This document shows, piece after piece, positions 5,966 to 55,257 of a DNA stretch of 64,000 nt. The first letter of the stretch is position 1. The number at the start of each line of letters is the position of its first letter. The stretch is taken from NCBI GenBank assembly GCA_002269645.1, contig NIVC01000463.1:1-64000 (forward strand), given 5' to 3'. The notes below the pieces were generated by a model that searched no databases, was not told the origin of the DNA, and saw only the letters and a program-made list of their open reading frames with translations. Source of the DNA: Macrostomum lignano. Its lineage: Eukaryota. A program made the position numbers and the translations under genes.

Positions 5966-8766
<2,801 letters not shown>

Positions 8767-8889
8767 TTGATTTGATACTGCAGTCTGATGTACGAGCTAC
8801 CGTTTACAGTTGTGGACTTGGTGTAGGGTTGCGGAAGGGTCTGGACTGTTTTGCGATCCTGTTTATTGCCTCTATTTAGCTTTGTGTCC

Positions 8890-9590
8890 GTGTCTGTCTC
8901 TGTCTGTCCCTGTCTGTCTTTCCCTGTCTGTCTTTTCCTGTTCCTATCTTTGTCTTTCCCTGCCTGTCTCTGTCTGTCCCTGTCTTTGTCTGTCCCTGTC
9001 TGTCTTTGTCTGTCCCTCTCTGTCTTTGTCTGTCCCTGTCTGTCTTTGTCTGTCCCTGTCTGTCTTTGTCTGTCCCTGTCTGTCTTTGTCTGACCCTGTC
9101 TGTCTTTGTCTGACCCTGTCTGTCTTTGCTGTCCCTGTCTGTCTTTGTCTGTCCCTGTCTGTCTTTGTCTGTCCCTGTCTTTGTCTGTCCCTGTCTGTCT
9201 TTGTCTGTCCCTGTCTGTCTTTGTCTGTCCCTGTCTGTCTTTGTCTGTCCCTGTCTGTCTCTGTCTGTCCCTGTCTGTCTTTGTCTGACCCTGTCTGTCT
9301 TTGTCTGACCCTGTCTGTCTTTGCTGTCCCTGTCTGTCTCTGTCTGTCCCTGTCTGTCTTTGTCTAACCCTGTCTGTCTTTGCTGTCCCTGTCTGTCTTT
9401 GCCTGTTCCTGTCTTTGTCTGTCCCTGTCTTTGTCTGTCCCTGTCTTTGTCTGTCCCTGTATTTGTCTGTCCCTGTCTGTCTTTGTCTGTCCCTGTCTTT
9501 GTATGTCCCTGTCTTTGCCTGTCCCTGTCTTTGTCTGTCCCTGTATTTGTCTGTCCCTGTCTGTCTTTGTCTGTCCCTATCTGTCAGTGT
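8890..9590. repeat. Compound CTGT/CTTTGT/CCCTGT simple repeat
   Basis: Direct inspection; explains many spurious ORFs. Confidence 0.9.
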
Positions 9591-11279
9591 CCTCTGTTCT
9601 CTTCCCTCTTCTATCTTCTCCCCCTGTACCTTGCCAGTTTTCTCCCACTGCATGGCAGTGACTTATTGTTTAACCCCGGCCACATCCCCCAGCAAAGCAT
9701 GTAACGAACTGCAGGCGCACAGTCAGCGAGAGCTTCGCTTCACCTCAGCCATGCATAATGCACGGCTGGTGAAGAAATTTCTGCCGTGTTTTACGACCTC
9801 CAAAACTATTATTATGGCCGCTGCACCGTGATCGGGAGTCGGTTACGCATTAGTTAATAATAAATCAGACATTGTTAACATGAGCACAGCGGCTTGTTCC
9901 ATGGGCTCTGGCTAAACGGGCTTAGTGACAGACGGGATGCTGCCCATGGGCCAACTAAAATAAGCCAGAAGCTAAGGACGTTGTAAAATTAGCTATCGAG
10001 ATTTCGGAAATTTTCAGTTCTTTTTTTAGCACTACGAAGCCGAACTGCCTATAGCTTCACCTTACTAAACTTCTGAATTGTAAACTGAACAACTGTGTGT
10101 TTTGTCAACCTACATGTATTTGCAAGTTCAGTTCACGGTGAGATGTGTTCTAGTTATTGTTAAATAAAACAGCAATTTCTGTCAACATTTTGCAGCAACA
10201 ATCCGGACTTCACAGCTATGAAAGCCAAACCCCTCCAAGGCACTGCATGGTGCTGTGTGACGATATCTGATTTGCTTTGCATCAAACCTTTGCATCAAAG
10301 AGCCGAATGCTCAGTTCAAGTAAGGAATGTAAAAGGCAGCACGAGCTGATAACTTGATTGCTCAATTGTTTGATCTCAGCACGCACGCAAACTCAGTCTC
10401 TGAGCTGTCTGGCTCATGTCATGTCCTCACGTCTAAATATGGCCGGATGTTTTGGCACTGCATTGGCGCACTGCTTTGTTGTCAAAAATAGCTTTCGAAC
10501 CTGTAAATCTAAACTCTATCTGATCCAAATTTTATCGATTTAATAAATTTTAAACTTTGAGCAGTGAGTTGTGGGATCTCAGCTCTAGGCAGGTATGCTG
10601 ACTGCTTCAACTTGAAGCGTAAACTATAATGAGACGTGGCATCTGAGCAGGTGCATTGCGGGCGCCTCAACTTTGCGAAGATGCGTTCTGCATGACTATA
10701 ATTTAGCAATTTTCCTAGGAACTGCTGCTCGCTTGTTGTTTCTTCCTGAATAGCAATGGCCCCGGCTATTGTCGCAAAATTTGCTGCAACGATTTTGCAG
10801 ACAGCCTTCCTTCTGCCTTCTGCATGTAGCGGTCATATAATTACAGACTGTTTGAGCCCAGGTAAGACTCGAAGTTCTGCCTATAATTAACATTCTGTCA
10901 AACAGAATTTCAGACTGTCTTCAGAAATTTTCTTCGAATTGATGCCGACAACTACAAGATCGAATTCGAATTTTAATCTGACTGAGTGGCATCTTGTCAC
11001 TCGAGAATTGTTTTGAGTAGGACGAGGCTGCAGAGCTTCATTCAGACTGAGTGCAGATTGGTTGGGCTTATTTGCATTTTCGGGAGAACAGTAGTATTTG
11101 CTAATTAACTTGTTGAGCAGTGGGCGCTGAGAAACCGTAGTCTGAATAACCGCTGATAAAGATTCATTAAGGAAAAAGGAGGTAGCCTAAGTATACATAA
11201 TCAAACTTCGAACTAAGGACCACTGGAAGTTACCGTTACAATATACAACACCACAGTGTTATCTTGTAAATTGGAAACC

Positions 11280-12869: not shown

Positions 12870-13535
12870 AATCAATTGGGGTTGTCGGCACATCAAAGGA
12901 CTTGAAATCAATGGGAGGGTGTCGGCACATCAAAGGAAGGACCTGAAATCAATGGGAGGTTGTCGGCACATCAAAGGAAGGACCTGAAATCAATGGGGGT
13001 TTTTCGGCACATTAAAGGAAGGACTTGAAATTAATGGGGGTTGTCGGCACATTAAAGGAAGGACTTGAAATCAATGGGAGTTGTCGGCCCTTCAAAGGAA
13101 GGACCTTAAATCTATAGGATTGTCGGCACTTCAAAGGAAGGACTTGAAATCAATGGGGGGTTGTCGGCACTTCAAAGAAAGGACCTGAAATCAATGGGGG
13201 ATTGTAGGCACTTCAAAGAAAGGACCTGAAATCAATGGGGGGGTTGTAGGCACTTCAAAGAAAGGACCTGAAATCAATGGGGGTTGTAGGCACTTCAAAG
13301 AAAGGACCTGAAATCAATGGGGGGTTGTAGGCACTTTAAAGAAAGGACCTGAAATCAATGGGGGGGGTTGTAGGCACTTCAAAGAAAGGACCTGAAATCA
13401 ATGGGGGGTTGTAGGCACTTCAAAGAAAGGACCTGAAATCAATGGGGGGTTGTAGGCACTTCAAAGAAAGGACCTGAAATCAATGGGGGGGGGTTGTAGG
13501 CACTTCAAAGAAAGGACCTGAAATCAATGGGGGTA
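12870..13535. repeat. ~41-bp minisatellite TGAAATCAATGGGGGTTGTAGGCACTTCAAAGAAAGGACC
   Basis: Direct inspection. Confidence 0.9.
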
Positions 13536-13606
13536 GGTGGCCTTAAGAGTCACAAACTTACGCTTGCACTATGCTTTCGTTCATGCAGGATCTGAACTTT
13601 GCAAGA

Positions 13607-14445
13607 ATGCTCGGTCAGCAACACAAAAGCGGCACGGGATGCGTCATCATGATTGCTTGTTTTCTCATCATGAGCTTTATCTCAGCTACCTGTCTGGCTC
13701 TGCCTCAGCAGAGTCGAGATGGCGCTTCGAACGTAGTCGACTTTGAAAACGAGGGCGACTTCTCGGACGCTGCTAGCTCTGTTCCGACTGACGACCAGTT
13801 CGAGCGCGTGAGTAAATAGTTTACTTACTCAGGTGGGTTCGTAGAGAGCCTCTAATACGAGCGTCTTATACGTGCATCATCGTAGATTTACAGAACAGGC
13901 GAGAGCCTAAACTCTCTAAAGGTCCGATCGTGGAGAGCCCCGATTTTTTGGGAGACTCGTAGGAGTCCAAAACTTTTGGAGGCTTCGTTGAGAGCTTTTG
14001 TTGCAGCTATTAGAGATGTTTATAGATAGAGAGCCTCAACGCGTAGAAAGATTCGTCTTGCAAAGAAGTAGGAGCCTAAATAAGGTCTACATAAATGTAA
14101 GAGCGTCGAGAGCCTCAAAGTAAATGGAGAGTGAAAATTCTGTCTGTCGATTTTTCGAAAATCTCCTGAAATCTCCGTAATTCCATTACGATGAGAGCCT
14201 CAACTCTTCAAACAGTTCGTAGGGAGCCTCAACTCTAGGGCCTTTGGTACGTAAAATAGCAAGAAACATAAGAAGCCAATTCAATAATCCGATTCCAGCG
14301 TCGTGAGCTGATGCAGAAGATTCGCAGCTTCCTGCTCCATCATCGGGGCCAATCGCCGAGCAATCAGGAGCTGCGGAAGCGCCACTCTGGCACAATGTCA
14401 ATGAAGAAGATTCGGACGATGTTCGACATGCTTCGCACCGGTTGA
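13607..14445 (+). CDS. Two-exon amidated neuropeptide precursor (115 aa)
   Basis: join(13607..13807,14299..14445), donor CGC|GTGAGT, acceptor TTCCAG|, phase 0. Hydrophobic signal CVIMIACFLIMSFISATCLA, acidic spacer, RRR-ELMQKIRSFLLHHRGQSPSNQEL-RKR-HSGTMSMKKIRTMFDMLRT-G-stop. Upstream acceptor at 13588; AATAAA at 14647-14652. Confidence 0.8.
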
Positions 14446-14869
14446 GATTGAGAACATCTATCAAATAGTTGAGGCTCTACTCAATTATTGATCGTCTAAT
14501 TGGCAAACAGATTTTTAACTAACCTTCGTGTTGCTTGCTGACAGCTATTTTATTAACCATCCTCGCTAGCTCCGTCTCGCTTAAACTTAGACCAGCGTAT
14601 CCATAGCGACTGTAGAAGCTGAGTAATGTTCAACTTTAGACAGAAAAATAAACCCGTGTACTGGCGATTTTGCTTTGCCATGTTGTAGGCCCCGAGTCGG
14701 GAACCTATTGCCTCACTTCAGTTGAGCATTCACTGATTTTTTCTTTTGACTACAACGGAGTCACTTCCGGGTTTTTAAAGCACATGCAGTACTTTTCATT
14801 TATCGCAAATGACACAGCTTCGATCACAGATTTTACTCCAAAGTTCACTTAGCAGTGAACGCAAACAGA

Positions 14870-15445
14870 TCACCCAAGAGTGGCACACAGATCACCCAAG
14901 AGTGGCACACAGAAGTCACTCAAGAGTGTCACACAGAATTCACTCGTGAGTGTCACACAAGTTACCCAAGAATGGCACACAAAAGTCACTCAAGAGTGTC
15001 ACACAGAATTCACTCGTGAGTGTCACACAAGTCACCCAAGAGTGGCACACAAAAGTCACCCAAGAGTGGCACACAAAAGTCACTCAAGAGTGTCACACAG
15101 AAGTCACCCAAGAGTGTCACACAGAAGTCACTCAAGAGTGTCACACAGAAGTCACCCAAGAGTGTCACACAGAAGTCACTCAAGAGTGGCACACAGAAGT
15201 CACTCACGAGTGTCACACAGAAGTCACTCAAGAGTGGCACACAAAAGTCACTCGCGAGTGTCACACAGAAGTCACCCAAGAGTGTCACACAGAAGTCACT
15301 CACGAGTGTCACATAGAAGTCACTCGTGAGTGTCACACAGAAGTCACCCAAGAGTGGCACACAGTTACTCAAGAGTGTCACACAGAATTCACTCGTGAGT
15401 GTCACACAGAAGTCACCCAAGAGTGGCACACAGTTACTCGAGAGT
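14870..15445. repeat. 24-bp minisatellite GTCACACAGAAGTCACTCAAGAGT
   Basis: Period 24. Confidence 0.95.
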
Positions 15446-16108
15446 GTCAAGTAGGCCCTAATCAAGTCAAAGTAATTTCCTACATGTACTGCAATCATAT
15501 TGACTTCATATTTTCCAGAATCTTCCCTCAAACACAATAGCCATTTGCGTCAGACTGAGGTCTAACCGAACAGATAATGACAGACAATGCGACACAAAAC
15601 TCAAAGGCAGCCTGAGAGACAAGGGCGAAAAAATCAAGAAAACTCAGTTATGTGATTTTTGCTTTTTGCTTAACTGCATGTTTATTAAAGGATAGAATTC
15701 TGTCAGGTAGGGGAAGTCAAGGCGCAAAAACTAGACAAATTGTAGTGCGCGTGCACACTTCTACCGTATTAGCGTTGAAGATCTACCTTCTGAAAAAGAA
15801 ACTAGATTTCGTAAAAACAGCACTTTTCATTCCGGAAAATTACCCTATCTAAATTTTATCTAAACATTTTCTGGATTCCAAATTCAAAGCAATAAAAAGT
15901 CTATATATTTTTTCGACCAAAAATACGTGAAAAGCTATCACTTAATCGCTTGTTGAGAGGACATGCGCTTTTAAAGGGCTGTCTATTACAGCACTAGCGT
16001 AATAATAGAACCCAAGGCAAAGTTAATTAGCTATATTCCTTTGCAACGACTGTCATCGCAAAAAAGTATTCACTTTTTTTCAGAGATTTTCTTCTTGCGT
16101 CTTCCGGT

Positions 16109-19100
16109 TCAGTAGGCCGAACCAGACTTCATTATTCTGCCTTGGATTGTGTTGGGCACGACTGGAATGCGAAGAAATTATCGTTATAAATTACGGATTC
16201 TTGTGATAATAAATTTCTGTTATAACCATGCCCTTCTTCTATTACTATCAGTAGGAACTTTGCGAATGACTTAAATAGAACGCGACTCTAGAAGCCTGTT
16301 TGAATAGGACTGTATGAAAAGAACAGTTAGACATGACAAGCTACATAGTGAAGGTGAGAAGCTACCTGTTAGGGACATGAGAAAGCCACCAGTTAGAGAC
16401 ATGAGAAGCCACCTGTTAGAGTCATGAGAAGCTACCTGCTAGAGACATGAGAAGTTACCTGCTAGAGACATGAGAAGCTACCTGTTAGAGACATGAGAAG
16501 CTACCTGCTAGAGACATGAGAAGCCACCTGTTAGGGACATGAGAAGCCACCTGCTAGAGACATGAGAAGTTACCTGCTAGAGACATGAGAAGCTACCTGC
16601 TAGAGACATGAGAAGCTTCCTGTTAGACACACTGACTAAGCTAACCTGAAGCAGTTGGTTATGAATGCATGGGCCTGATCTGACCCCTTAACCACAGCTC
16701 CCCCCTCAGCTCACGCGGTGCGGGCTGCCTATCTTCGAACCAGTACTTGGTTCCAGTTTTGGCACGTTGCAGCGCCTGCGATCTGTACAAATCGCCTCGG
16801 CTGGCGGAGCCCAGAGGGATTCCGGCGGCGTTGCGCGGCTGCACCTTTGGCGCCAGGCGGCTGTTGACGCTGAGGCCGCCGAACCCGGCAGCTCCCGGGT
16901 AGCCGTGCGGAGGAAAGCGGCGACAGTCGTCCTCCTTGACGTTGCCTGGTCGGGGGGGAAGGGGGGTGAGTTGCTGCTGAAACTGTGACTTTTTGCTACT
17001 AATAGTAGTTGCCCATTTTAATTAGATTCGATAAATATGCTGAAAAATTCCAGTGTAAAAAGTCAGATGTCAGTGTCAGAGGTCAGATGTCAGTGTCAGA
17101 AGTCAGATGTCAGTGTCAGAAGTCAGATATAAGTGTCAGAAGTCAGATGTCAGTGTCAGAAGTCAGATATAAGTGTCAGAAGTCAGATGTCAGTGTCAGA
17201 AGTCAGATATAAGTGTCAGAAGTCAGATGTCAGTGTCAGAAGTCAGATGTCAGTGTCAGAAGTCAGATGTCAGTGTCAAAAGTCAGATGTCAGTGTCAGA
17301 AGTCAGATGTCAGTGTCAGAAGTCAGATATCAGTCTCAGTGTCAGATGTCGGTCAGTGTCAGTGTCAGTTTTAGTGTCAGATGTCGGTCAGTGTCAGTGT
17401 CAGTTTCAGATGTTGGTCAGTGTCAGTGTCAGATGTCGGTGTCAGAAGTCAGGTGTCGGTGTCAAAGGTCAGATACAGTGTCAGAAGTCAGGTGTCGGTG
17501 TCAGAGGTCAGGTGTCGGTATCAGAGGTCTGATGTCGGTGTCAAAGGTCAGATGTCAGTGTCAGAAGTCAGATGTCGGTGTCAGAGGTCAGATTTCAGTG
17601 TCATCTTTTCATATCTTCGCACAGAAACCCGGTAGGTAGAGGCAGCGCCACTCACCGTCGATAAACATGATATTGTTGCCCAAATTGCCGGTGCACTGCC
17701 GCACGTGTCGCCAGCAGCTGCCGTTACGACCCGAACGAAACACCGGCGATCCATCCAGTGGATGCGCCTGCTGCTGCGAGCGCGACTGCGACAGCGCCGG
17801 CTCAAGGAGGCGCAGCTGAGCCGGGTCCAGCACCGGCAGGGTCTGGTAGCCGGGCAGTTGCCATGGAGACAAGAGCACGAATGGCTGCTGCTGCTTCTGT
17901 CCGTTGCCAGCAGTCGGTCCGCTCTGAACTCCAGGCACATAGTAGGGGTAGAAAAGGGCGCCACCGGCTGACGCCAGGCCGCCCGGCTGATCAGCTTCGG
18001 TGCCCTGGCTGGCGCTGACACCCATGGCCGGCGGCAGGGCCGCGTCGGTCTGCGTTTAATTAATTATTATAGTGGGGATTAACTACTTAGTAAATTGAGT
18101 TTATTAGTAGTATAAAAGAGTTTAATTCACTAAATATTATGGTTACCTAATTTGATTTTTGAAATTCAGATATGCGAATATGTTGCTGGTTGAACTCTCG
18201 ACTTACAGAGAATTTTTAGAATCCGGATAATTATCGAAGAGAGAGAGAGAGTTAGGAAATCCAGGTGATTATCGAATAGCGACTTAAATTCTCACCGAAA
18301 AAACCCAAGGAATCGAAAACTAGAAAATCATCAGAAGATCCGCTTCTCATCACACCCTACCTGAATCTCCATATTTCTCTTCATCGCGCTGGGCGCCCGC
18401 CGGATGGGCACGTACTGCGGCCAGCAGGAGGCGTCCGCGGTGGATCTCAGCGACATCTGGGATCCGGATCTGGAGTGGGGAAAAGTGCAACACGATGACT
18501 CAGCAATAGCTTACTGCTAGCAGAGGGTGCGTGATGTGCCATGCCAGCGGCCCAGGCTCGATTCCAAGTGCAGTCGCATTAATTTGGGGCTGAATTGGAA
18601 TCTCGGCTTGGCTCTGCGCGTGCAATTAACGGCCTTGATACCAATACCCCCCAAGGCACAGATTGTGTACATGACTGACGATTAAAAAGTCAGTGGGCAG
18701 CTGTACACCTTGTGTGAGCGCGTGTATGAGAGTGCCTGCTGGCTAAAGAAATGCAAAACCCAATCCAACTCATTAAGCGAAGTGAAAGTCTAGACTGCAG
18801 CTGCGGACCTCTGTTTGAGCAATGCCGTGTTTAAACAAAAACTGTCTACGAAATTGGAGCTGCATGGTCTCAGAACTAAAGTGCAATATTCTAAGCTAGA
18901 GGCAGGATTCAATGTAGGATTCCAGGAATTTCTAAGACACTTAGCGCCTGCATTTCTAAGAAAATTGCTGCTAATTATATTACTAAGATAGTTGACGCTT
19001 ACATTTCTAGAACAGTTGACGCTTACATTTCTAAGACAGTTGACGCTTACATTTCTACCACAGTTGACGCTTACATTTCTAAGACAGTTGACGCTTACAT

Positions 19101-19980
19101 TTCTACCACAGTTGACGCTTACATTTCTAAATCAGTTGACGCTTACATTTCTAAAACAGTTGACGCTTACATTTCTACCACAGTTGACGCTTACATTTCT
19201 AAAACAGTTGACGCTTACATTTCTAAATCAGTTGACGCTTACATTTCTAAAACAGTTGACGCTTACATTTCTACCACAGTTGACGCTTACATTTCTAAAA
19301 CAGTTGACGCTTACATTTCTAAATCAGTTGACGCTTACATTTCTAAAACAGTTGACGCTTACATTTCTACCACAGTTGACGCTTACATTTCTAAAACAGT
19401 TGACGCTTACATTTCTAAAACAGTTGACGCTTACATTTCTACCACAGTTGACGCTTACATTTCTAAAACAGTTGACGCTTACATTTCTAAGACAGTTGAC
19501 GCTTGCATTTCTAAGACAGTTGATGCTTGCATTTCTAAGACAGTTGAAGCTTACATTTCTAAGACAGTTGACGCTTACATTTCTAAGACAGTTGATGCTT
19601 ACACTACTAGGACAGTTGACGCTTACATTTCTAAGACAGTTGACGCTTACATTTCTACCACAGTTGACGCTTACATTTCTAAGACAGTTGATGCTTACAC
19701 TACTAGGACAGTTGATGCTTACATTTCTAAGACAGTTGATGCTTACAATTCTAAGACACTTGGCGCTTACACTTCTAAGACACTTAGCGCTTACATTTCT
19801 AAGACAGTCGGTGCTTACAATTCTAAGATAATTGACGCTTACTTATCTAAGACAGTTGACTTAAGACCAAACCAACTGTACATGCATTTACCTTCTCGGC
19901 AGCCCGCCAGCCTCAGTTCGCTGCTGCAAGCCAACTCCACTCGGGCCGGCAGTTTTCGGCCGTTGAATTCCACTGCTCAT
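16109..19980 (-). CDS. Uncharacterised Pro/Gly/Gln-rich protein (~291 aa, 5 exons)
   Basis: complement(join 19980..19892, 18469..18361, 18049..17656, 16945..16715, 16161..16109). All junctions GT-AG with consistent phases (2,0,1,1). MSSGIQRPKTAG...CWRHVRQCTGNLGNNIMFIDG...KYWFEDRQPAPLVPNTIQGRIMKSGSAY*. Minus-strand AATAAA near 15685. Confidence 0.7.
16345..16625. repeat. 23-bp minisatellite GAGACATGAGAAGCTACCTGCTA
   Basis: Direct inspection; intronic. Confidence 0.9.
17060..17600. repeat. 20-bp minisatellite AGTCAGATGTCAGTGTCAGA
   Basis: Direct inspection; intronic. Confidence 0.9.
18540..18745 (+). mobile_element. SINE family copy (5'-truncated)
   Basis: Near-identical to 34250-34430 (GCTCGATTCCAA...ATTAATTTGGGGCTGAATTGGAATCTCGGCTTGGCTCTGC...GTGTACATG...GCTGTACAC). 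Confidence 0.8.
18930..19860. repeat. 24-bp minisatellite CAGTTGACGCTTACATTTCTAAGA
   Basis: Period 24; source of the LTLTFLRQ pseudo-ORF. Confidence 0.95.
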
Positions 19981-29103: not shown

Positions 29104-32100
29104 CAGACAGACAGACACAAACAGACAGACACACAGACAGACAGACAGACACACAGACAGACACAAACAGACAGACACAAACAGACAGACAGACACACAG
29201 AAGCGGCACTCACGGAGCGGGGCAGCAGCATTGAGGTGAGGCGGGAGGTGAAGCTCTCCGACCGTTTAACCGGACGCGGCGGTGGCCGGCTGTTTTGCTG
29301 CTTCTGTTCGGCGGATTGCGGCGCAGAAAAAGCAGAAGAATTCGATGCGGAAGAAGACAAAACAGCCGAAAAAGATTGCGGCAGAGAAGGCGGAGACGGC
29401 CGGGTCTTCAAGCAGCGCGGGCAGACAACTGCGGCGCGAGAAGCTGGGAAAGCTTCATCGCTGGGATTAACCGCTACAGAAGTTTTACCTTCCTTATTTG
29501 GCATGATCTGCTTTTGGACAGATTAAATAGAAAGCTGCAGAATCTCTCGATTTAAACGGGACTGAAGTTTTGCGTCTGTGTGTCCCGGCAGCCAGTCGCC
29601 CCTCCGCCAGCTTTTATCCCCTTTCTATACAGCCAGCTGACTGTGCAGGTCGGAGAGACAGAAAAAACGGGAAGACACCGAAGAAAGAAATGATGTAGAA
29701 GCCTTGCCCAGCAACACCCTCACTCTAACTGAATCTGGTGCAGGTAAAAAAAGTTGCACGCAGAAACCCACCATCTGGCTCTTGTTGGACCTGCACGGTT
29801 CGAACATTCGGGCCCAATAACGGTAGCCCCACCCCCTGCAGCTCCCCTCCACCTTCTTCGCCATTCTAAATTATCCCCAACTACCTTAGCAACACCCCCT
29901 GTACAACGGGAAAGATTTTCCCTATAAACCTTATGCCTATGAAGTTGGAGAGAGGAAGAGAGAAACGTCAAGGAGATAAGATAAGCGATCCGGATATGAA
30001 AGGTAAACGAAGGGAAACTTTGGGCTTAGTAGAGCTTTTATATGCTTGTATGTGTAACGGATTCTAACACGTGTTTTCAATTAATATGCGTGAGCCAGTC
30101 AGTCAGTCAGTCAGTCAGTCAGTCAGTCAGTCAGTCAGTCAGTCAGTCAGTCAGTCAGTCAGTCAGTCAGTCAGTCAGTCAGTCAGTCAGTCAGTCAGTC
30201 AGTCAGTCAGTCAGTCAGTCAGTCAGTCAGTCAGTCAGTCAGTCAGTCAGTCAGTCAGTCAGTCAGTCAGTCAGTCAGTCAGTCAGTCAGTCAGTCAGTC
30301 AGTCAGTCAGTCAGTCAGTCAGTCAGTCAGTCAGTCAGTCAGTCAGTCAGTCAGTCAGTCAGTCAGTCAGTCAGTCAGTCAGTCAGTCAGTCAGTCAGTC
30401 AGTCAGTCAGTCAGTCAGTCAGTCAGTCAGTCAGTCAGTCAGTCAGTCAGTCAGTCAGTCAGTCAGTCAGTCAGTCAGTCAGTCAGTCAGTCAGTCAGTC
30501 AGTCAGTCAGTCAGTCAGTCAGTCAGTCAGTCAGTCAGTCAGTCAGTCAGTCAGTCAGTCAGTCAGTCAGTCAGTCAGTCAGTCAGTCAGTCAGTCAGTC
30601 AGTCAGTCAGTCAGTCAGTCAGTCAGTCAGTCAGTCAGTCAGTCAGTCAGTCAGTCAGTCAGTCAGTCAGTCAGTCAGTCAGTCAGTCAGTCAGTCAGTC
30701 AGTCAGTCAGTCAGAGTAGAACTGCTCTGCCCTCTGACACTTTACACAGGCTATTCAAATGCACAGATTCAAGTTGAAGAGTCTCTGATAACATTTCAGT
30801 AAACGGATTAATAATAAAATTATTCCAAAAACAACTGATTCGCAAACAATGAATAGTTAGCCAAACTAAAAGAAGAAAATGCCTGCAATATAAAAGCATA
30901 GAAACAGAAGCTATGAAGCAAAACCGATGAACGAGATGGATAGAAAAGCACAGAGCAACAGGCCTAGCAAGCGGAACAGCAATGTTTGCTGTATATAAAT
31001 ATTTATACCGAGTCCCATGCGGATAAAAGTGGAGCATAGGCTTAAAAGGTTTACAGCTTATTCATTCTATTCTAGGACTTTACAAGTGCCCAACTACATA
31101 GTATTAAACCAACCGCCCTGTTGAGCGAGGACGCGGTTCATTCATTCTCATTTTTCAAGAGTTGCTGCACTTTATACACACCGCAAATTTAGCGATTGAA
31201 TGTCCACTTAAAGCTCCACAAAAAAAGCAATCACGTGGCTAACTGATCCTCAATCTCGTCTCCGACACGTACTCGCTTCATCCCCAAGCTCTGCCAATGC
31301 AAACAAAGTTCATGGCATGTTTCCAAGCGTTATATGAACTGCTGCTATAGGATTTATTACAATACGGTAGCTCAAAGGACTTATTGATCACTAGAAGGAA
31401 TATAAAATAGAGAAATGTTCTATGAAGAACTGATACTTTCTTCGTAGCGAGATTAGAATTTCTGCGATTGATATGAGGGTTGCTGCGATCGATATGGAGG
31501 TTGCTGCGATCGATATGGGTGGGGGTTGCTGCGATCGATATTGGGGTTGCTGCGATCGATATGGGTGGGGGTTGCTGCGATCGATATGGGTGGGGGTTGC
31601 TGCGATCGATATGGGTGGGGGTTGCTGCGATCGATATGGGTGGGGGTTGCTGCGATCGATATGGGTGGGGGTTGCTGCGATCGATATTGGGGTTGCTGCG
31701 ATCGATATGGGTGGGGGTTGCTGCGATCGATATGGGGGTTGCTACGACCGATATGGGTGGGGGTTGCTGCGATCGATACTGGGGGTTGCTTCAATCGATA
31801 TGGGGGCCACTTAGATCGATACTGGGATGTTGCTGCAATTGTGATTGAAATTTCTGCTTTTCTGAAGCCTCTAAGATCTTAGATGGAGGTTAATTTATAA
31901 ATTTAATTTTTTTCTGAGACTAAGATTAGGGGGTTACAATAATCGACGCAATGGAGTTTCTAAATTGAAACACAGGCATCGAGAGAGTACAGACATGCCT
32001 GACGATTAGAAAGTCAAAGGGCCCGCTGTACACCCTGTGTGAGCGTGTGTATTCGAGTGCGCGCCTAAGTACAGTATTGGCGCGCATTTATGCGTGCTCA

Positions 32101-33160
32101 GGTGTCAGCGGAATAAGCAGAATTGCCTCAGCGCTGGGCATAACCCACTTTATGTAAACTTCGAGCAACCTGCTGGCCAAGCGCCACTCACCCAGCTGGT
32201 GTACTCCTTAACCTCGTGGTTGAGCGTGTGCCCGCCAGCAGTCACCCCGGTCCAGAAGCACTCCTGGCACAGATTAAACGAACCGATGCACTGTTGGCAT
32301 TTGTACCGAAAGCCCAATATCGGCTCCTGGCCGCACACCGAGCACCTCACTGGATGGCTGGCGGTAGTCTGCAGCCGATGAAATGTCGTCAGCCAGAGCA
32401 GCGGCTGTGGAGCGGCGTCTTCGGCTAGAAGAATTTCCAAGAAATGCAACAGACCGGCGCACTGAGACAGAAAGCAGCAGGTGTCCGGCTGGTAATAGAA
32501 ATTATTCTGTTCGAATACTCCGGCAGGTAAGGATAGCAGTTCGATGGTGTAAGCCTGGGCTTTAGTGCGATCTAGCACCCCAGTAACCGGGTCGCATATG
32601 AGCGTGAAATGATAGCGCAATTTATCAATAGGCTTAGCGTTGCACAGTACAGACATGGCCACTTTAGCGCCTAGTGCGGTCATTCGCTGGCCGAAGCCGA
32701 ACTGCGATCTGGCAAACAGCCAAGCGTGCAGCATGCCGGCCAGTTCCTGCAGGTAGTTCTCGTGAGCGCCGGCCACTTCGGCTGAGTTGGCCAGCCCGAG
32801 CCGCTTGTTCAACTGATCGTACAGGGTGCATAGCAACTGTTCGAGCTGTTCCGGGCTCAGCTCGGCATCATATTCGAGCACGTGAAAATGGGCCAGTCTG
32901 AAGCATTCGATCAAGGTGTACAGGTCAACCAGGTGGAGGCTGACTCGACGTTGGATGAAGCGCAGTTTCATTGCTGTTCGATAGGCGGCGAAACGGATGC
33001 GATCTAGCTGGGACTGTTCTGTTTGAGTTGCATGAGGATAGAACGCTAATTGCAGATCCAACTAAAACTATTACTTTAAAATTAAATAGGGTTTTGAAAA
33101 AACCTGCTACTTACTTAAATCCTGCAGTAGCTTTTTGTAGTACACGGATGATGATGTCAT
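22345..33160 (-). CDS. dyb: Dystrobrevin
   Basis: complement(join 33160..33115, 33018..32192, 26134..25786, 24287..23945, 23071..22345), phases consistent; the exon-2 acceptor could alternatively be ~33046. Hallmarks: [19 protein letters not shown] (EF-hand region), ZZ finger HPVRCSVC...GFRYKCQQC...LCQECFW...[31 protein letters not shown], and coiled coils [36 protein letters not shown]. No WW domain or spectrin repeats. Confidence 0.93.
23110..23720. repeat. 19-bp minisatellite TTTCTAAGAATCACGTCTG
   Basis: Direct inspection; intronic. Confidence 0.9.
24305..24575 (+). repeat. 33-bp minisatellite built from a tRNA T-arm/B-box (GGCCCGGGTTCGATTCC)
   Basis: Period 33 (24481 to 24514). Each of ~8 units carries GGTTCGATTCC or a close variant. 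Confidence 0.85.
25003..25770. repeat. 30-bp minisatellite TCATCCCAAATCTCCCAGATTCCCTTCTAG
   Basis: Period 30; intronic. Confidence 0.95.
26215..26700. repeat. 20-bp minisatellite CACTAAGGCGCCAAATTGTC
   Basis: Direct inspection. Confidence 0.9.
27490..27660. repeat. 21-bp degenerate repeat TTGGGGAATTCTATTGAAAC
   Basis: About 8 imperfect units. Confidence 0.75.
28950..29200. repeat. (GACA)n microsatellite
   Basis: Direct inspection. Confidence 0.95.
29214..29507 (-). CDS. Probable alternative (cassette or alternative first) exon of dystrobrevin, 98 codons
   Basis: AAGCAG| acceptor, open frame IMPNKEGK...CPRC...[17 protein letters not shown], consensus donor TCC|GTGAGT. Phase 0/0 matches the host intron (TSW|KQPGK). 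Confidence 0.55.
30096..30711. repeat. Perfect (CAGT)n microsatellite, 154 units
   Basis: Direct inspection. Confidence 0.98.
31470..31830. repeat. 25/19-bp minisatellite GTTGCTGCGATCGATATGGGTGGGG
   Basis: Direct inspection. Confidence 0.9.
31985..32140 (+). mobile_element. SINE family fragment (central/3' part)
   Basis: ACATGCCTGACGATTAGAAAGTCAAAGGGCCCGCTGTACACCCTGTGTGAG core shared with the other copies. Confidence 0.75.
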
Positions 33161-35200: not shown

Positions 35201-38200
35201 ATGCCTATTGATTCTAGAATGCAGAGTTTTGAAATAGGCATCAACCTGCGAGTAACAGAATGCATGAATCAGGGTATGCGTGCATACATGGAAGATTTTG
35301 CAACATATTACTTTGAAAAGTGCCCAGACAAGCCTGAATCTGATCGCATTAAATTTGCCTACTTTGGTGTTTTTGATGGTCATGGTGGAGCTGAAGCAGC
35401 TAAATTTGCTAAGTCTCATCTATTGAGTGAAATAAAGAAGATTGATGGCTTTTGGTCAAATGATGACAATGCTGTTCTTGAAGCTATAAGACAAGGCTTC
35501 ATTAATACCCACAAAGCAATGTGGAATGAGCGAGGTAAGCTCTATACTAATTTTTAATTTTTGTTTAAAAAATGCTAATAGGCCTAGCATTGACTAAATC
35601 TTTTTGCATTTTATAAGGCTTATTTTAAAATATAAAAATGTTAGTTCCAATCAATTACTTTTTATTTTTTACTCTATTGTACAAAGCATTATATAAACCA
35701 TTAGGGCCTAGGCATTATATTATAATAAACTATTTTAAATATATGGTTTAATTTTTGATAAAAATAAAGAATATTATTATTAAAAAGTAAGCAAAAAGAC
35801 AGATATAATTATTAATGTGACTATGAGCATAAAATAAAATATAAAATATATGATGAACTATGCCTTATATAGGATATACTATTATATATATTATGATATG
35901 TCATGTCAATACACTACACTGTCTAAATCTATATTAATATATGGCACCTTTTTTGTCTAAACCAAATGCATATCTAGGTCTAAGAGAAAAACTTTAAGTG
36001 TGCTATATGATTTTAAAATAGAAAATTGCATACAATTTTTATTATAAAATATACAAGTTTTTGTTTGGCATTTGAATTTTATAAGCAATTCTTTATAGGC
36101 TTTTCTATACAAAGTAATGAATATCTAAAAAGAAATGTTATAATTCTTTCTTTAATATTAAAATAGTACTCATTGACTTTGCTTTTAAATTCATAACAAA
36201 TGCAATATGTTTATACTAGATGGATCTAGTTAAACAAGTTTGTTAGTAAATGTGCATAACTAAATTACTTTATCAACAATATCTAGGCTATTAGCTAATA
36301 AGTTAACAACTATAGATATATAAAGTATTAACAATGATGTATTATTATGTATTATGATGTATTAATGTATTATTACTTTTCTATTGTTCTTCTTTCTTCT
36401 AACTGCCTACAAATCTATTACAATTATTTCCCTAATTTATCCTAAAAATAGCAACTAATCTACCCCAAAAATTGCCAATTCTAATGAACAATCACCTTCA
36501 AATTGCTGAGGCTAACTATGAGGTCCCAAATCTATTGAAAGAATTGCTACAAATCCACCCTAGAAATAGCCCTAAATTCACTAAAAAACTCTAATTAATT
36601 ACAATTATTGCTAAGGCTCACTCACTAAAATTGCCCTTATAGATCCCAAGAATCATCCTTAATTCTTCATTACAATCGCTCTTAATCCCCCATTGGAATC
36701 ACCCTAATCCACCCCAATAATCACTCTAATCCACCTCAAGAATCACTCTAATCCACCCCAATAATCACTCTAACCCACCAGGAATCGCCCCTAATCTCCC
36801 CATTTGAATCACTAATCCACCACAAGAATCGCTCTAATCCACCCCAGAAATCGCCTCTAATCTTCCCATTTGGATCACTGTAATACACCCCAAGAATCGC
36901 CCCTAATCCCCCAAAAAGAATTGGCTTTGATCCACCCCAGGAATTGCCCTTAATCTCCCTTTAGAATCGCCCTTGATCCCCACTAGAATCACCGCTTAGA
37001 GTCCCCATGAACCGAGCCGAACTCTTAAATGCGGAAGAATATTTCTTGACCAATTTAGAATCTCTATAAAATCAAGCTTAAGATAGGCTAACATAGTTAA
37101 CCAATCAATGTTGAATAGCCACAGAGTCACGTGACGCACCCACAATTGTCCCCTACAACAACCCGCCAGGCAACTGGGCCAAGACTTCGCGCGGTTTAGA
37201 CAGCACAGCCGGCACCACAGCCTCCATTGCTATTGTGCGCAATCGTAAACTCTACACTGGCCACGTTGGCGACTCGGCCATTGTGCTGGGCTGTCGGGAC
37301 ACCCGCGAACAATCCCGCGATCTGTGGCACGCTCAAGCACTCACGGTTGAGCACAAGCCGTCAAACCCGAAGGAGCGAGAGCGTATCGAACGGGCCGGCG
37401 GCAGTCTGATGCGCAAAGGCGGCGTCTATCGGGTTGTGTGGCGCCGGCCAGCTCAGTCGAGCGGCGCCGATTCGTCTCCTCAGCAACAGCAGCAGCGCCA
37501 GTTATTTGAATCGGTGCCATTCCTAGCCGTAGCCCGTTCCCTGGGCGATTTATGGTCCTACGATAAAAACTCTTCGGAATTCCACGTTTCCCCAGAGCCG
37601 GACGTGCAGTGCATCAATTTGGATTATAGCAAGCACAAGTGCCTCATATTGGGTTCCGACGGATTGTGGAATATGGTTGCCCCGATAGCGCCGTTGAGAT
37701 GGTGCACATCTGCGAGAGATCCACAGAGAATAAGGTATTGTTATTGGAATTTGCTTTGTTTATATAAGATTTCTATAAGAAAATGGGTCTGTATTCTAAG
37801 AAACAGAGCTGCTATTTCAAGAAATTGGGTCTGTATTCTAAGAAACAGAGCTTCTTTTCCGAAAACTGGGTCTGTATTCTAAGAAACAGAGCTGCTATTT
37901 CAAGAAATTGGGTCTGTATTCTAACAAACAGAGCTTCTTCTCCGAAAACTGGGTCTGTATTCTAAGAAACAGAGCTGCTATTCCAAAAAACTGGGTCTGT
38001 ATTCTAAGAAACAGAGCTACTATTCCAAGAAACTGGGTCTGTATTCTAACAAACAGAGCTTCTTTTCCGAAAACTGGGTCTGTTTTCTAAGAAACAGAGC
38101 TTCTTTTCCGAAAACTGGGTCTGTATTCTAAGAAACAGAGCTGCTATTCCAAAAAACTGGGTCTGTATTCTAAGAAACAGAGCTTCTATTCCAAGAAACT

Positions 38201-39391
38201 GGGTCTGTATTCTAAGAAACAGAGCTTCTATTCCAAGAAACTGGGTCTGTATTCTAAGAAACGGAGCTGCTATTCCAAGAAACTGGGTCTGTATTCTAAG
38301 AAACAGAGCTGCTATTCCAAGAAATTGGGTTTGTATTATTTAACTCAAGAAACCGAGTTACTGTTCTAAGAAACCCGGACACAATTTTAACAAATTAAAT
38401 ATCCATTTAAAAAAGCGGGGACCATTTTAAGAAACAAAGTTTCTGTTTAAGAATTAAGAGACAAAGACATTCAGAGATTAAACCTCTTTGTCTGCCGCCC
38501 TCTCTGCCGCAGGTATTCACCGACCCGGACGTGCCGCAGAATTTCTTTTACAATCCAAGCGGCAGCCTGGTTCAGATGGCGATGCAACGCTGGATGCGAG
38601 CCGACCTGCGGGCTGACAACATCACCGCTCTGGTGGTGATGCTGGACCCGCCGGGCAGGCCCATGTCGCAGCTGCGCAGCGAACAGCGCGACTTGACGCT
38701 AGCCAGGCTGGGACTGCAGCGAGAGTCGCCGACTGTAGTTGAAGGCGGCTTCTCAGACGATGCCGAACGACAGCAGAGTCAGCAGCAGCAGCCGCTTCGC
38801 CTGCACGATCTGTTGGTCCAGTGCGACAAATGGCAGAACGCCAACAGGCCCGGCGCCAATGCTCACGGCCACGCCAGGCACGCGCCGGCAGCCGCCGTCG
38901 AGCCGAGCGGCAAGCTGACTGGCCAGGCAATGGTGAAACGGCAGGCCGGCAGCGATCGGACCCTGTTCTCGCCCGGCTTCAAACGTTCCCCGGCTCCGCC
39001 CCCGTTGTCGGGCTCGGCGACAGCGTCGGCTCCAGCATCGCAGGCTGCTGGCGTCAGCTTCTACCTGCCAACGACTCCAACAATTGATTCTACTTCTCCG
39101 TCGGCAAAGCGGCAGACTCGATCTACCGCGGCGTCTCCTGCTGCTGCTGCTGCCGCCGCCGCGCCGTCAAGTCCTGCTGGTAAAAAGCAGCAGAAACAGC
39201 AAAAGCAGCAACAATTGAAGCTGAAAAAGTCCGGCTCTGCCGCTGCTGCTGCTACTGCTGCTGCTGCTTCCACTTCTGCAACACCGGTTGCTGCTAAACG
39301 CCGGCGCCTGTCAATGGGCTCCTCGGTGCCGGGAGCTTCGGCTGTTGAAAGCTGTTTAAAACGGCTTCGTAAGCGAAAGAGTGTGCGCTAA
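35201..39391 (+). CDS. PPM1D: Protein phosphatase 1D (Wip1, PP2C family); 1-nt frameshift at ~37680-37683 as assembled
   Basis: join(35201..35534, 37170..37734, 38513..39391). Motifs QGMRAYMED, FGVFDGHGG, W.KT..GL.ST.GTTAS, HVGDS..VLG, LT.EHKP, RVVWRRP, PFLAVARSLGDLWSY....EF.VSPEPDV, ILGSDGLWN, RADNIT. Low-complexity basic C-tail. Confidence 0.95.
36640..36990. repeat. Degenerate ~23-bp repeat (AATCGCCCTAATCCCC...)
   Basis: Direct inspection; resembles the reverse complement of the 39590-40215 array. Confidence 0.65.
37780..38370. repeat. 42-bp minisatellite GGGTCTGTATTCTAAGAAACAGAGCTGCTATTCCAAGAAACT
   Basis: Period 42; fills PPM1D intron 2. Confidence 0.95.
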
Positions 39392-41344: not shown

Positions 41345-42510
41345 CTAGTGTCATTGAGTCGGCTAAAATTAGTGTCATTGGGGGCGCTTAAATTAGTGTC
41401 ATTAGGTCCGCTAAAAGTAGTGTCATTAGGTCCGCTAAAATTACTGTCATTGGGGTGCTAAAAGTAGTGTCATTAGGTCCGCTAAAATTACTGTCATTGG
41501 GGTGCTAAAATTTGGTGTCATTGGAGCGCTAATATTAGTGTCATTAGGTCCGCTAAAATTAGTGTCATTAGGTCCGCCAAAATGTGTCAAATGGGGTGCT
41601 AAAATTAGTGTCATTAGGTCCGCTAAAATTAGTGTCATTAGGTCCGCTAAAGTTAGTGTCATTAGGTCCGCTAAAATTAGTGTCATTAGGTCCGCTAAAA
41701 TTAGTGTCATTAGGTCCGCTAAAATTAGTGTCATTAGGTCCGCTAAAATTAGTGTCATTAGGTCCGCTAAAATAAGTGTCATTAGGTCCGCTAAAATTAG
41801 TGTCATTAGGTCCGCTAAAATTAGTGTCATTAGGTCCGCCAAAATGTGTCATATGGGGTGCTAAAATTAGTGTCATTGGGGTGCTAAAATTATTGTCATT
41901 TGGGTGCTAATATTAATGTCATTGGGGTGCTAAAATTGGTGTCATTGGGGTGCTAAAGTTAGTGTCATCGGGGTGCTAAAGTTAGTGTCATTAGGTCCGC
42001 TAAAATTAGTGTCATTAGGTCCGCTAAAATTAGTGTCATTAGGTCCGCTAAAATTAGTGTCATTAGGTCCGCCAAAATGTGTCATATGGGGTGCTAAAAT
42101 TAGTGTCATTGGGGTGCTAAAATTATTGTCATTTGGGTGCTAATATTAATGTCATTGGGGTGCTAAAATTGGTGTCATTGGGGTGCTAAAGTTAGTGTCA
42201 TTGGGGTGCTAAAGTTAGTGTCATTAGGTCCGCTAAAATTAGTGTCATTAGGTCCGCTAAAATTAGTGTCATTAGGTCCGCTAAAATTATTGTCATTTGG
42301 GTGCTAAAATTAGTGTCATTGGGGTGCTAAAGTTAGTGTCATTGGGGTGCTAAAGTTAGTGTCATTGGGGTGCTAAAGTTAGTGTCATTAGGTCCGCTAA
42401 AAGTAGTGTCATTAGGGTGCTAAAGTTAGTGTCATTGGGGTGCTAAAGTTAGTGTCATTGGGGTGCTAAAGTTAGTGTCATTAGGTCCGCTAAAAGTAGT
42501 GTCATTGCAG
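41345..42510. repeat. 24-bp minisatellite GTCATTAGGTCCGCTAAAATTAGT
   Basis: Direct inspection. Confidence 0.95.

Positions 42511-42697: not shown

Positions 42698-50775
<8,078 letters not shown>

Positions 50776-52825: not shown

Positions 52826-55257
<2,432 letters not shown>

Follow-up and report, generated by a model that had tools for sequence, protein, structure and literature searches.

Fifty-one prohormone genes have been described in the planarian Schmidtea mediterranea (Collins et al., 2010; PMC2953531), encoding small preproproteins with a signal peptide, an acidic spacer, basic cleavage sites and a glycine that serves as amide donor. Prohormone processing in flatworms is PC2-dependent (PMC2953531, PMC4490696), and knock-down of the pc2 homologue of Macrostomum lignano produces a severe phenotype (PMC4490696). 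In other Spiralia, precursors of the PDF/cerebrin family (Platynereis, nemerteans, brachiopods; PMC3890597, PMC8557429) are about 70–100 amino acids in length and contain a signal peptide, a helical associated peptide, a basic site and a C-terminal amidated peptide of 17–20 amino acids starting x-x-G-[TV]. The CRF/DH44/ELH family (Pfam PF00473, PF02323) comprises amidated peptides of 36–46 amino acids (shorter in annelids), with repeated motifs in the lophotrochozoan DH44 precursors (PMC6425005). Here we describe the gene Mlig009841 of M. lignano, located in a stretch of 64,000 nucleotides (positions 1–64,000, forward strand, of contig NIVC01000463.1, assembly GCA_002269645.1; hereafter the window), which probably encodes a lineage-restricted, prohormone-like precursor processed at two tribasic sites, RRR and RKR, to yield an amidated basic peptide of 19 amino acids. 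Its product resembles the planarian prohormones in being a small preproprotein with a predicted signal peptide, an acidic spacer, basic sites and a glycine donor.

Mlig009841 consists of two exons, and all of its features described below lie on the forward strand. Exon 1 (13607–13807; 201 nucleotides) begins with the ATG at 13607 and ends in phase 0, the intron (13808–14298; 491 nucleotides, GTGAGT...TTCCAG) has GT-AG ends, and exon 2 (14299–14445) terminates in ...CGC ACC GGT TGA, with the TGA stop at 14443–14445. Both the donor GCG/GTGAGT (13807/13808) and the acceptor TTCCAG/C (14298/14299) are canonical and strong. Joining 13807 to 14299, as proposed in an earlier sequence-only reading of this DNA, reproduced a continuous frame of 115 amino acids in translation, and the GenBank record NIVC01000463.1 carries an identical product at the same coordinates (13607–14445) as 'hypothetical protein' BOX15_Mlig009841, implying the same intron. 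As the annotation of this assembly is RNA-seq-derived (genome-guided StringTie/TACO plus a de novo transcriptome, with open reading frames called by TransDecoder; PMC5730564), transcripts lend the 13807/14299 junction, and with it the transcription and splicing of the gene as proposed, indirect support. The gene had been presented as hidden, with only its first exon in the list of open reading frames; the model is in fact already in GenBank, and exon 2 is also listed, as a 44-amino-acid frame at 14311–14445. An exact look-up retrieved the protein as PAA57451.1 and PAA82544.1 (BOX15_Mlig009841g3 and g2) and as UniRef100_A0A1I8HJI8. Look-ups of the locus tags and accessions found no paper mentioning them in the literature searched, and the gene model is public but uncharacterised.

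Two further in-frame ATGs occur upstream (13571 and 13583), with an in-frame stop at 13544. A candidate cis- or trans-splice acceptor, ctttcgttcatgcAG/G, could be read at 13575–13588; if used, this putative acceptor (13588/13589) would remove both upstream ATGs and leave 13607 as the first AUG of the transcript. Approximately 39% of M. lignano genes are trans-spliced (PMC5730564). At the other end, an AATAAA at 14647–14652, some 200 nucleotides past the stop and the sole AATAAA or ATTAAA within 14446–15500, is a candidate polyadenylation signal.

The translation reads, in order, MLGQQHKSGTGCVIMIACFLIMSFISATCLA, LPQQSRDGASNVVDFENEGDFSDAASSVPTDDQFE, RRR, ELMQKIRSFLLHHRGQSPSNQEL, RKR, HSGTMSMKKIRTMFDMLRT, G and stop, and hence contains each of the elements that the sequence-only reading had named, i.e. 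signal peptide, acidic spacer, RRR, RKR and a glycine directly before the stop. The predicted signal peptide, MLGQQHKSGTGCVIMIACFLIMSFISATCLA, starts at the initiation codon and covers residues 1–31 (13607–13699), with predicted cleavage after CLA; this call is a heuristic one, made from hydrophobicity and from the -3/-1 rule read by eye. Residues 12–31 or thereabouts form the single strongly hydrophobic segment of the precursor (Kyte-Doolittle means of 2.0–2.7 over residues 10–33 in a 15-residue window), the small residues C and A occupy the -3 and -1 positions of the predicted cleavage site, and Cys is absent downstream of the signal peptide. The acidic spacer LPQQSRDGASNVVDFENEGDFSDAASSVPTDDQFE (residues 32–66; 13700–13804) has a net charge of -8. 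The RRR site (residues 67–69) is split by the phase-0 intron, its first Arg codon being the last codon of exon 1 (13805–13807) and its second and third Arg codons opening exon 2 (14299–14304). It is followed by predicted peptide 1, ELMQKIRSFLLHHRGQSPSNQEL (14305–14373; 23 amino acids, not amidated, predicted monoisotopic mass 2747.429), by the RKR site (residues 93–95; 14374–14382), which is presumably cleaved, and by predicted peptide 2, HSGTMSMKKIRTMFDMLRT (14383–14439), a basic and Met-rich 19-mer with a predicted C-terminal amide (monoisotopic mass of the amide 2269.132; isoelectric point 11). The amide donor, G115, and the TGA stop occupy 14440–14445.

Charge is thus segregated along the precursor, the spacer standing at -8 and the C-terminal peptide part at +10. 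In composition-matched shuffles of the pro-region, at least two tribasic runs were present in 1.8% and, together with a terminal Gly, in 0.11%, which argues that the layout is more than chance. The protein has the generic features of a neuropeptide or peptide-hormone precursor, namely a predicted N-terminal signal peptide as its sole membrane segment, basic convertase sites and a Gly donor. In our proposed route, the N-terminal signal peptide would send the protein into the secretory pathway, a PC2-type convertase would cleave after RRR and RKR in cells with regulated secretion, either neurons or endocrine-like cells, a carboxypeptidase would remove the basic residues, and peptidylglycine alpha-amidating enzymes would convert the C-terminal Gly. 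The expected products would be the acidic spacer, the 23-amino-acid ELMQKIRSFLLHHRGQSPSNQEL and the 19-amino-acid, basic, Met-rich and partly helical HSGTMSMKKIRTMFDMLRT-NH2, of which the last would be the likeliest bioactive one, acting as an intercellular signal at some receptor. Secretion, cleavage, amidation, the producing cell type and any signalling role are inferred.

An AlphaFold model made from the single sequence (mean predicted local distance difference test, pLDDT, of 62.9) gives helix positions of moderate confidence. It places a helix at residues 10–30, within the signal peptide, followed by a stretch of pLDDT below 50 (residues 32–51), such that the first two-thirds of the spacer seem disordered. 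A second helix (residues 62–82; pLDDT about 82) is predicted to pass through RRR into ELMQKIRSFLLHH, a non-helical GQSPSN loop separates the second and third helices in the middle of the peptide region, the third being short (residues 89–95), and a last helix is predicted at residues 102–114 (SMKKIRTMFDMLR; pLDDT about 80). An amphipathic helix had been suggested earlier; the amphipathicity is modest and unremarkable, the hydrophobic moment of the 19-mer being 0.41 against 0.24 +/- 0.12 in shuffles, 7.6% of which were equal or higher.

The assembly contains three copies of the locus, on contigs NIVC01000463.1, NIVC01002487.1 and NIVC01001526.1, with collinear flanks. The NIVC01002487.1 copy encodes an identical 115-amino-acid product, while that on NIVC01001526.1 (BOX15_Mlig009841g1) encodes a protein 98% identical over its full length, with just two amino-acid differences, C18S and F19L, both inside the signal peptide. 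All three copies retain an intact reading frame and an identical mature region. Across exons, intron and near flanks (window positions 13534–14860 compared) they are 97–98.5% identical; exon 2 has no variable column among 147, and the intron 15 among 491, a comparison weakly compatible with constraint on exon 2. Identity between the copies falls sharply from about 14760 on, where their tandem-repeat content differs. Duplicated blocks amounting to 180 Mb (at least 95% identity) have been published for the DV1 line, and the three copies fit that picture.

Beyond these copies the protein appears to be an orphan. The 115-amino-acid M. lignano protein BOX15_Mlig009841g1 was the sole match in a word-indexed homology search covering 5.8 billion proteins. 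An exhaustive phmmer search against 1.84 billion representative proteins gave no match outside M. lignano and only the paralogue within it, and a search of PDB sequences with the 46-amino-acid C-terminus (E <= 10) was empty.

The two predicted peptides share the short motif M-x-K-I-R-[ST], from which an internal duplication had been proposed. At the DNA level the repeat consists of ATGCAGAAGATTCG (14311–14324, encoding MQKIR) and ATGAAGAAGATTCG (14401–14414, encoding MKKIR), which agree at 13 of 14 nucleotides and are spaced by exactly 90 nucleotides; their score was reached in 47 of 5000 codon shuffles (0.9%). The protein alignment of MQKIRS with MKKIRT (score 21) was matched by 4.4–7.4% of shuffles. 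An origin of the shared motif by internal duplication is possible but weakly supported.

UniProt automatically names UniRef100_A0A1I8HJI8 a 'CRF domain-containing protein', and because of this label the CRF/DH44/ELH family was tested directly; the label was not reproduced here. At E <= 1 the full precursor matched no Pfam family. Even at E <= 10 the C-terminal fragments matched no hormone family, whether Hormone_2, CRF, ELH, Pigment_DH, calcitonin or PTH; the sole match obtained, to GIDA_C_1st (E = 0.048), was discarded as spurious. A CRF/UCN/DH44/ELH hidden Markov model (HMM) was built from database members retrieved via a seed alignment; in the family profiles, the Aplysia ELH and human UCN3 peptides served only as seeds or as single rows beside database sequences. 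The precursor scored 2.3 bits against it, a value equalled or bettered by 74 of 3000 shuffles. A lophotrochozoan DH44/ELH model, made of 25 Platynereis DH44 repeats (PMC3890597 supplement) and gastropod ELH peptides, gave 0.1–2.1 bits (9–34% of shuffles equal or better), neither profile score being significant, and hhalign against an 18-sequence CRF-family alignment returned a probability of 0.33%. The N-terminal motif P-x-[LF]-S-[IV]-[DN] of CRF/DH44 ([IL]-S-I-[NT] in ELH), seen in nearly all family members aligned, is absent, as ELMQKI follows RRR and HSGTMSM follows RKR. Length is the single non-trivial argument for the family: a peptide within its size range, an amide of 45 amino acids, would arise, but only if RKR stays uncut, and the model places the non-helical GQSPSN loop at its middle. 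Compared with the CRF/DH44/ELH family, the precursor lacks a Pfam match, profile significance and P-x-L-S-I-D/N, and has a Gly/Pro loop midway.

The PDF/cerebrin family was tested on account of the shared precursor layout and of a suggestive alignment with Platynereis PDF. The best local alignment pairs KRHSGTMSMKKIRTMFDMLRTG with KRNPGTLD--AVLDMPDLMSLG, at a score reached by 0.9% of shuffles when the mature peptides alone are compared. By eye, the associated-peptide helix (RQEIM..KILRIAL in PDF/cerebrin, RRELM.KIRSFLL here) and the peptide ends also looked PDF-like, a likeness that failed the profile test: an HMM of 15 spiralian precursors (PMC8557429 supplement) gave 1.7–2.6 bits, with 2.7–3.6% of shuffles equal or better, i.e. 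noise level, and hhalign a probability of 0.7%. The mature core x-G-x-x-D-[SA]-[LV]-x-x-[LM]-P-x-x-[LF] is absent from the M. lignano peptide. Agreement is confined to G3, T4 and a loose tail, M-x-D-[LM]-[ML]-x-x-G, and where PDF has D-S-L and L-P the M. lignano peptide reads S-M-K and M-F. In layout, the precursor does match the 13 short members of the set (72–97 amino acids; two from Phoronis are longer), including the short amidated C-terminal peptide with its x-x-G-[TV] start, but this layout is not family-specific; moreover, the D-S-L-[WFY]-x-L-P core of PDF/cerebrin peptides is missing and those compared have few basic residues, whereas the peptide described here is strongly basic.

Peptides of the secretin/glucagon type begin with H-[SA]-[DEQ]-G-[TI]-F-T-[SD], and VIP and PACAP are C-terminally amidated. 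The start of peptide 2 had been said to echo this family through an HS-x-T pattern, yet the agreement is limited to H1 and S2. Both have His-Ser immediately behind a basic site as well as a C-terminal amide, predicted in the case of peptide 2, but peptide 2 lacks the F6, T7 and D8/9 core, it has 19 amino acids against 27–44 in the secretin/glucagon/VIP/PACAP family (Pfam PF00123), and Hormone_2 was, as stated, unmatched. Searches reported in the literature, 41 flatworm transcriptomes included, recovered no peptide of the PACAP/secretin family from protostomes (PMC7251081). Among the planarian prohormones the product fits none of the amide families compared (RL/RM-, RF-, RRVV- and W-amides, against ...LRT-amide here), none of the 4-mers KIRT, KIRS, MLRT, LRTG, KRHS and FDML occurs in the planarian prohormone supplementary sequences (PMC2953531), and motif look-ups in planarian and schistosome prohormone papers returned nothing. 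Membership in any known hormone family is thus not demonstrated. The assignment to the class-B ligands, which drew on the CRF/DH44/ELH, PDF and secretin families, was left without a significant match in any of the three, and the caution with which the sequence-only reading had offered it was justified.

Three other explanations were weighed against a lineage-restricted prohormone. A first, quite unlikely possibility is that the product has diverged strongly from the CRF/DH44/ELH or the PDF/cerebrin type and is a ligand for a G-protein-coupled receptor of class B1 (secretin type). In the former version RKR would stay uncut and the whole 45-amino-acid ELMQ...MLRT-NH2 after RRR would be one peptide, which suits the 36–46 amino acids and the amide of the CRF family and has a parallel in insect DH46, where an internal RRR is retained, but the G/P/S/N-rich loop at residues 84–88 would break a continuous CRF-type helix. 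In the latter, the signal peptide, helical associated peptide, basic site and short amidated peptide at the extreme C-terminus would correspond to the short spiralian PDF precursors of about 70–100 amino acids, in line with the Platynereis alignment described above. Flatworms do retain secretin-type receptors, the only one of Fasciola being PDF-receptor-like (E = 9e-46) and S. mediterranea having up to 20 (PMC6114109), and no flatworm ligand for PDF-type or CRF/DH44-type receptors was found in the literature covered. Set against this are the missing Pfam matches at E <= 10, HMM scores of 0.1–2.6 bits overall, the negligible hhalign probabilities for both families and the absence of both cores, P-x-L-S-[IV]-[DN] of CRF/DH44 and D-S-L-x-x-L-P of PDF. 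Since several families were tried, nominal P values of about 0.01–0.04 are what chance would be expected to give. The failed tests weaken the claim of identity, yet one may speculate that the product acts on a class-B receptor; that HSGTMSMKKIRTMFDMLRT-amide or the 45-mer amide is in truth a strongly diverged flatworm ligand of a conserved PDF-type or CRF/DH44-type receptor we consider highly doubtful.

Precursors of antimicrobial peptides may likewise join an acidic propiece to a basic peptide. The pairing seen here (-8 and +10) would accordingly suit a secreted effector rather than a hormone, such as a cationic peptide with an antimicrobial or defence role, or else a product of glands or of the seminal fluid; before processing, the basic peptide would be kept neutralised by its acidic propiece. 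This explanation is unlikely, although it is helped by the predicted helicity of the C-terminal peptide, by the want of homologues outside M. lignano and by the fast evolution of reproduction-related secreted genes in Macrostomum (PMC7336406). Its unremarkable amphipathicity, again with 7.6% of shuffles at or above the observed moment, and low mean hydrophobicity (-0.17) make the peptide poorly suited to membrane activity, and the regulated neuroendocrine pathway is where tribasic sites plus a Gly-stop are most characteristically seen. Very unlikely, in our view, is a young, lineage-specific transcribed frame without biological function, its prohormone-like features being fortuitous. In favour of this, the protein is an orphan among 1.84 billion representative proteins; the frame sits in repeat-rich DNA between large tandem-repeat arrays, and its copies are too alike for a measurable test of selection. 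However, a signal peptide, tribasic sites, a terminal Gly and charge segregation are rarely combined by chance (0.11% for sites and Gly alone), all three copies have kept the frame intact and the mature region identical, and the splice sites are canonical and strong.

Several observations also weigh against the prohormone reading that we favour. With the three copies 97–98.5% identical throughout, little weight can be put on the invariance of exon 2 (Poisson P about 0.01–0.04 at the intron rate), and no orthologues were found on which constraint could be tested. Transcript support comes only through the annotation, and the signal-peptide call rests on hydrophobicity and the -3/-1 rule. The RKR site may be left uncut, as is the internal RRR of insect DH46, and the KK within peptide 2 may be cut. 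Finally, small orphan secreted proteins of M. lignano could equally be gland or seminal-fluid products.

The intron of Mlig009841 contains at least seven copies of a degenerate motif, GTTCGTAGAGAGCCTC(AAC), at irregular spacing (29–89 nucleotides; 13837–14230), and an inverted copy in the 3' untranslated region (14464–14478) is 93% complementary to 14194–14208. All four exact matches of GAGAGCCTC in the 64-kb window lie inside this intron (0.46 expected; four reached in 0 of 100 shuffles). Possible explanations are a minisatellite in decay, clustered binding sites and pairing between the intron and the 3' untranslated region. Upstream of the gene, a tandem array of the 41-bp unit AAAGGACCTGAAATCAATGGGGGGTTGTAGGCACTTCAAAG (12895–13533; 15.6 copies with 91% matches) stops 74 nucleotides short of the start codon, and any core promoter or splice acceptor must therefore lie in those 74 nucleotides or inside the array. 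Downstream, a 24-bp tandem array (14870–15433; about 24 copies) starts about 425 nucleotides past the stop and yields several long spurious open reading frames of 149–196 amino acids on both strands.

Short-period tandem repeats fill much of the window (e.g. 2240–2944, 8670–9831, 18992–19831, 30042–30802, 41346–42506 and 54595–55247) and dominate its list of long open reading frames. A 13-bp satellite, GGGGGTTGATTGT (43225–45158; about 150 copies), accounts for the extreme GC skew (+0.54 to +0.58), and for the negative AT skew as well, in the 42–46 kb interval. Directly after it, a frame at 45976–46587 (forward strand) resembles, by eye only, a retrotransposon RNase H-like region. Conserved genes neighbour the locus. 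An exon on the reverse strand (32150–33061) encodes EF-hand_2 (E = 1e-21), EF-hand_3 (7e-13) and ZZ (1e-10) domains of the dystrophin/dystrobrevin type. The frame at 37235–37882 (forward strand) matches protein phosphatase 2C (E = 5e-30), and those at 35201–35557 and 38531–39391 (forward strand) have the look of PP2C-type exons, again by eye only. An Rfam scan of the whole window (1–64000) at gathering thresholds found no RNA family.

At present Mlig009841 adds one further uncharacterised candidate prohormone, already in public databases, to those of the flatworms. M. lignano is a transgenic, regenerating flatworm model for which we found no published neuropeptide catalogue, and this orphan precursor, with its transcript support and clearly laid-out processing sites, lends itself to functional work. 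Should the less likely class-B reading prove true, the peptide would identify the ligand of a conserved secretin-type receptor in flatworms and show how far ligands can drift while their receptors remain recognisable. If the amide instead pairs with an orphan flatworm G-protein-coupled receptor, a lineage-specific signalling system would be added.

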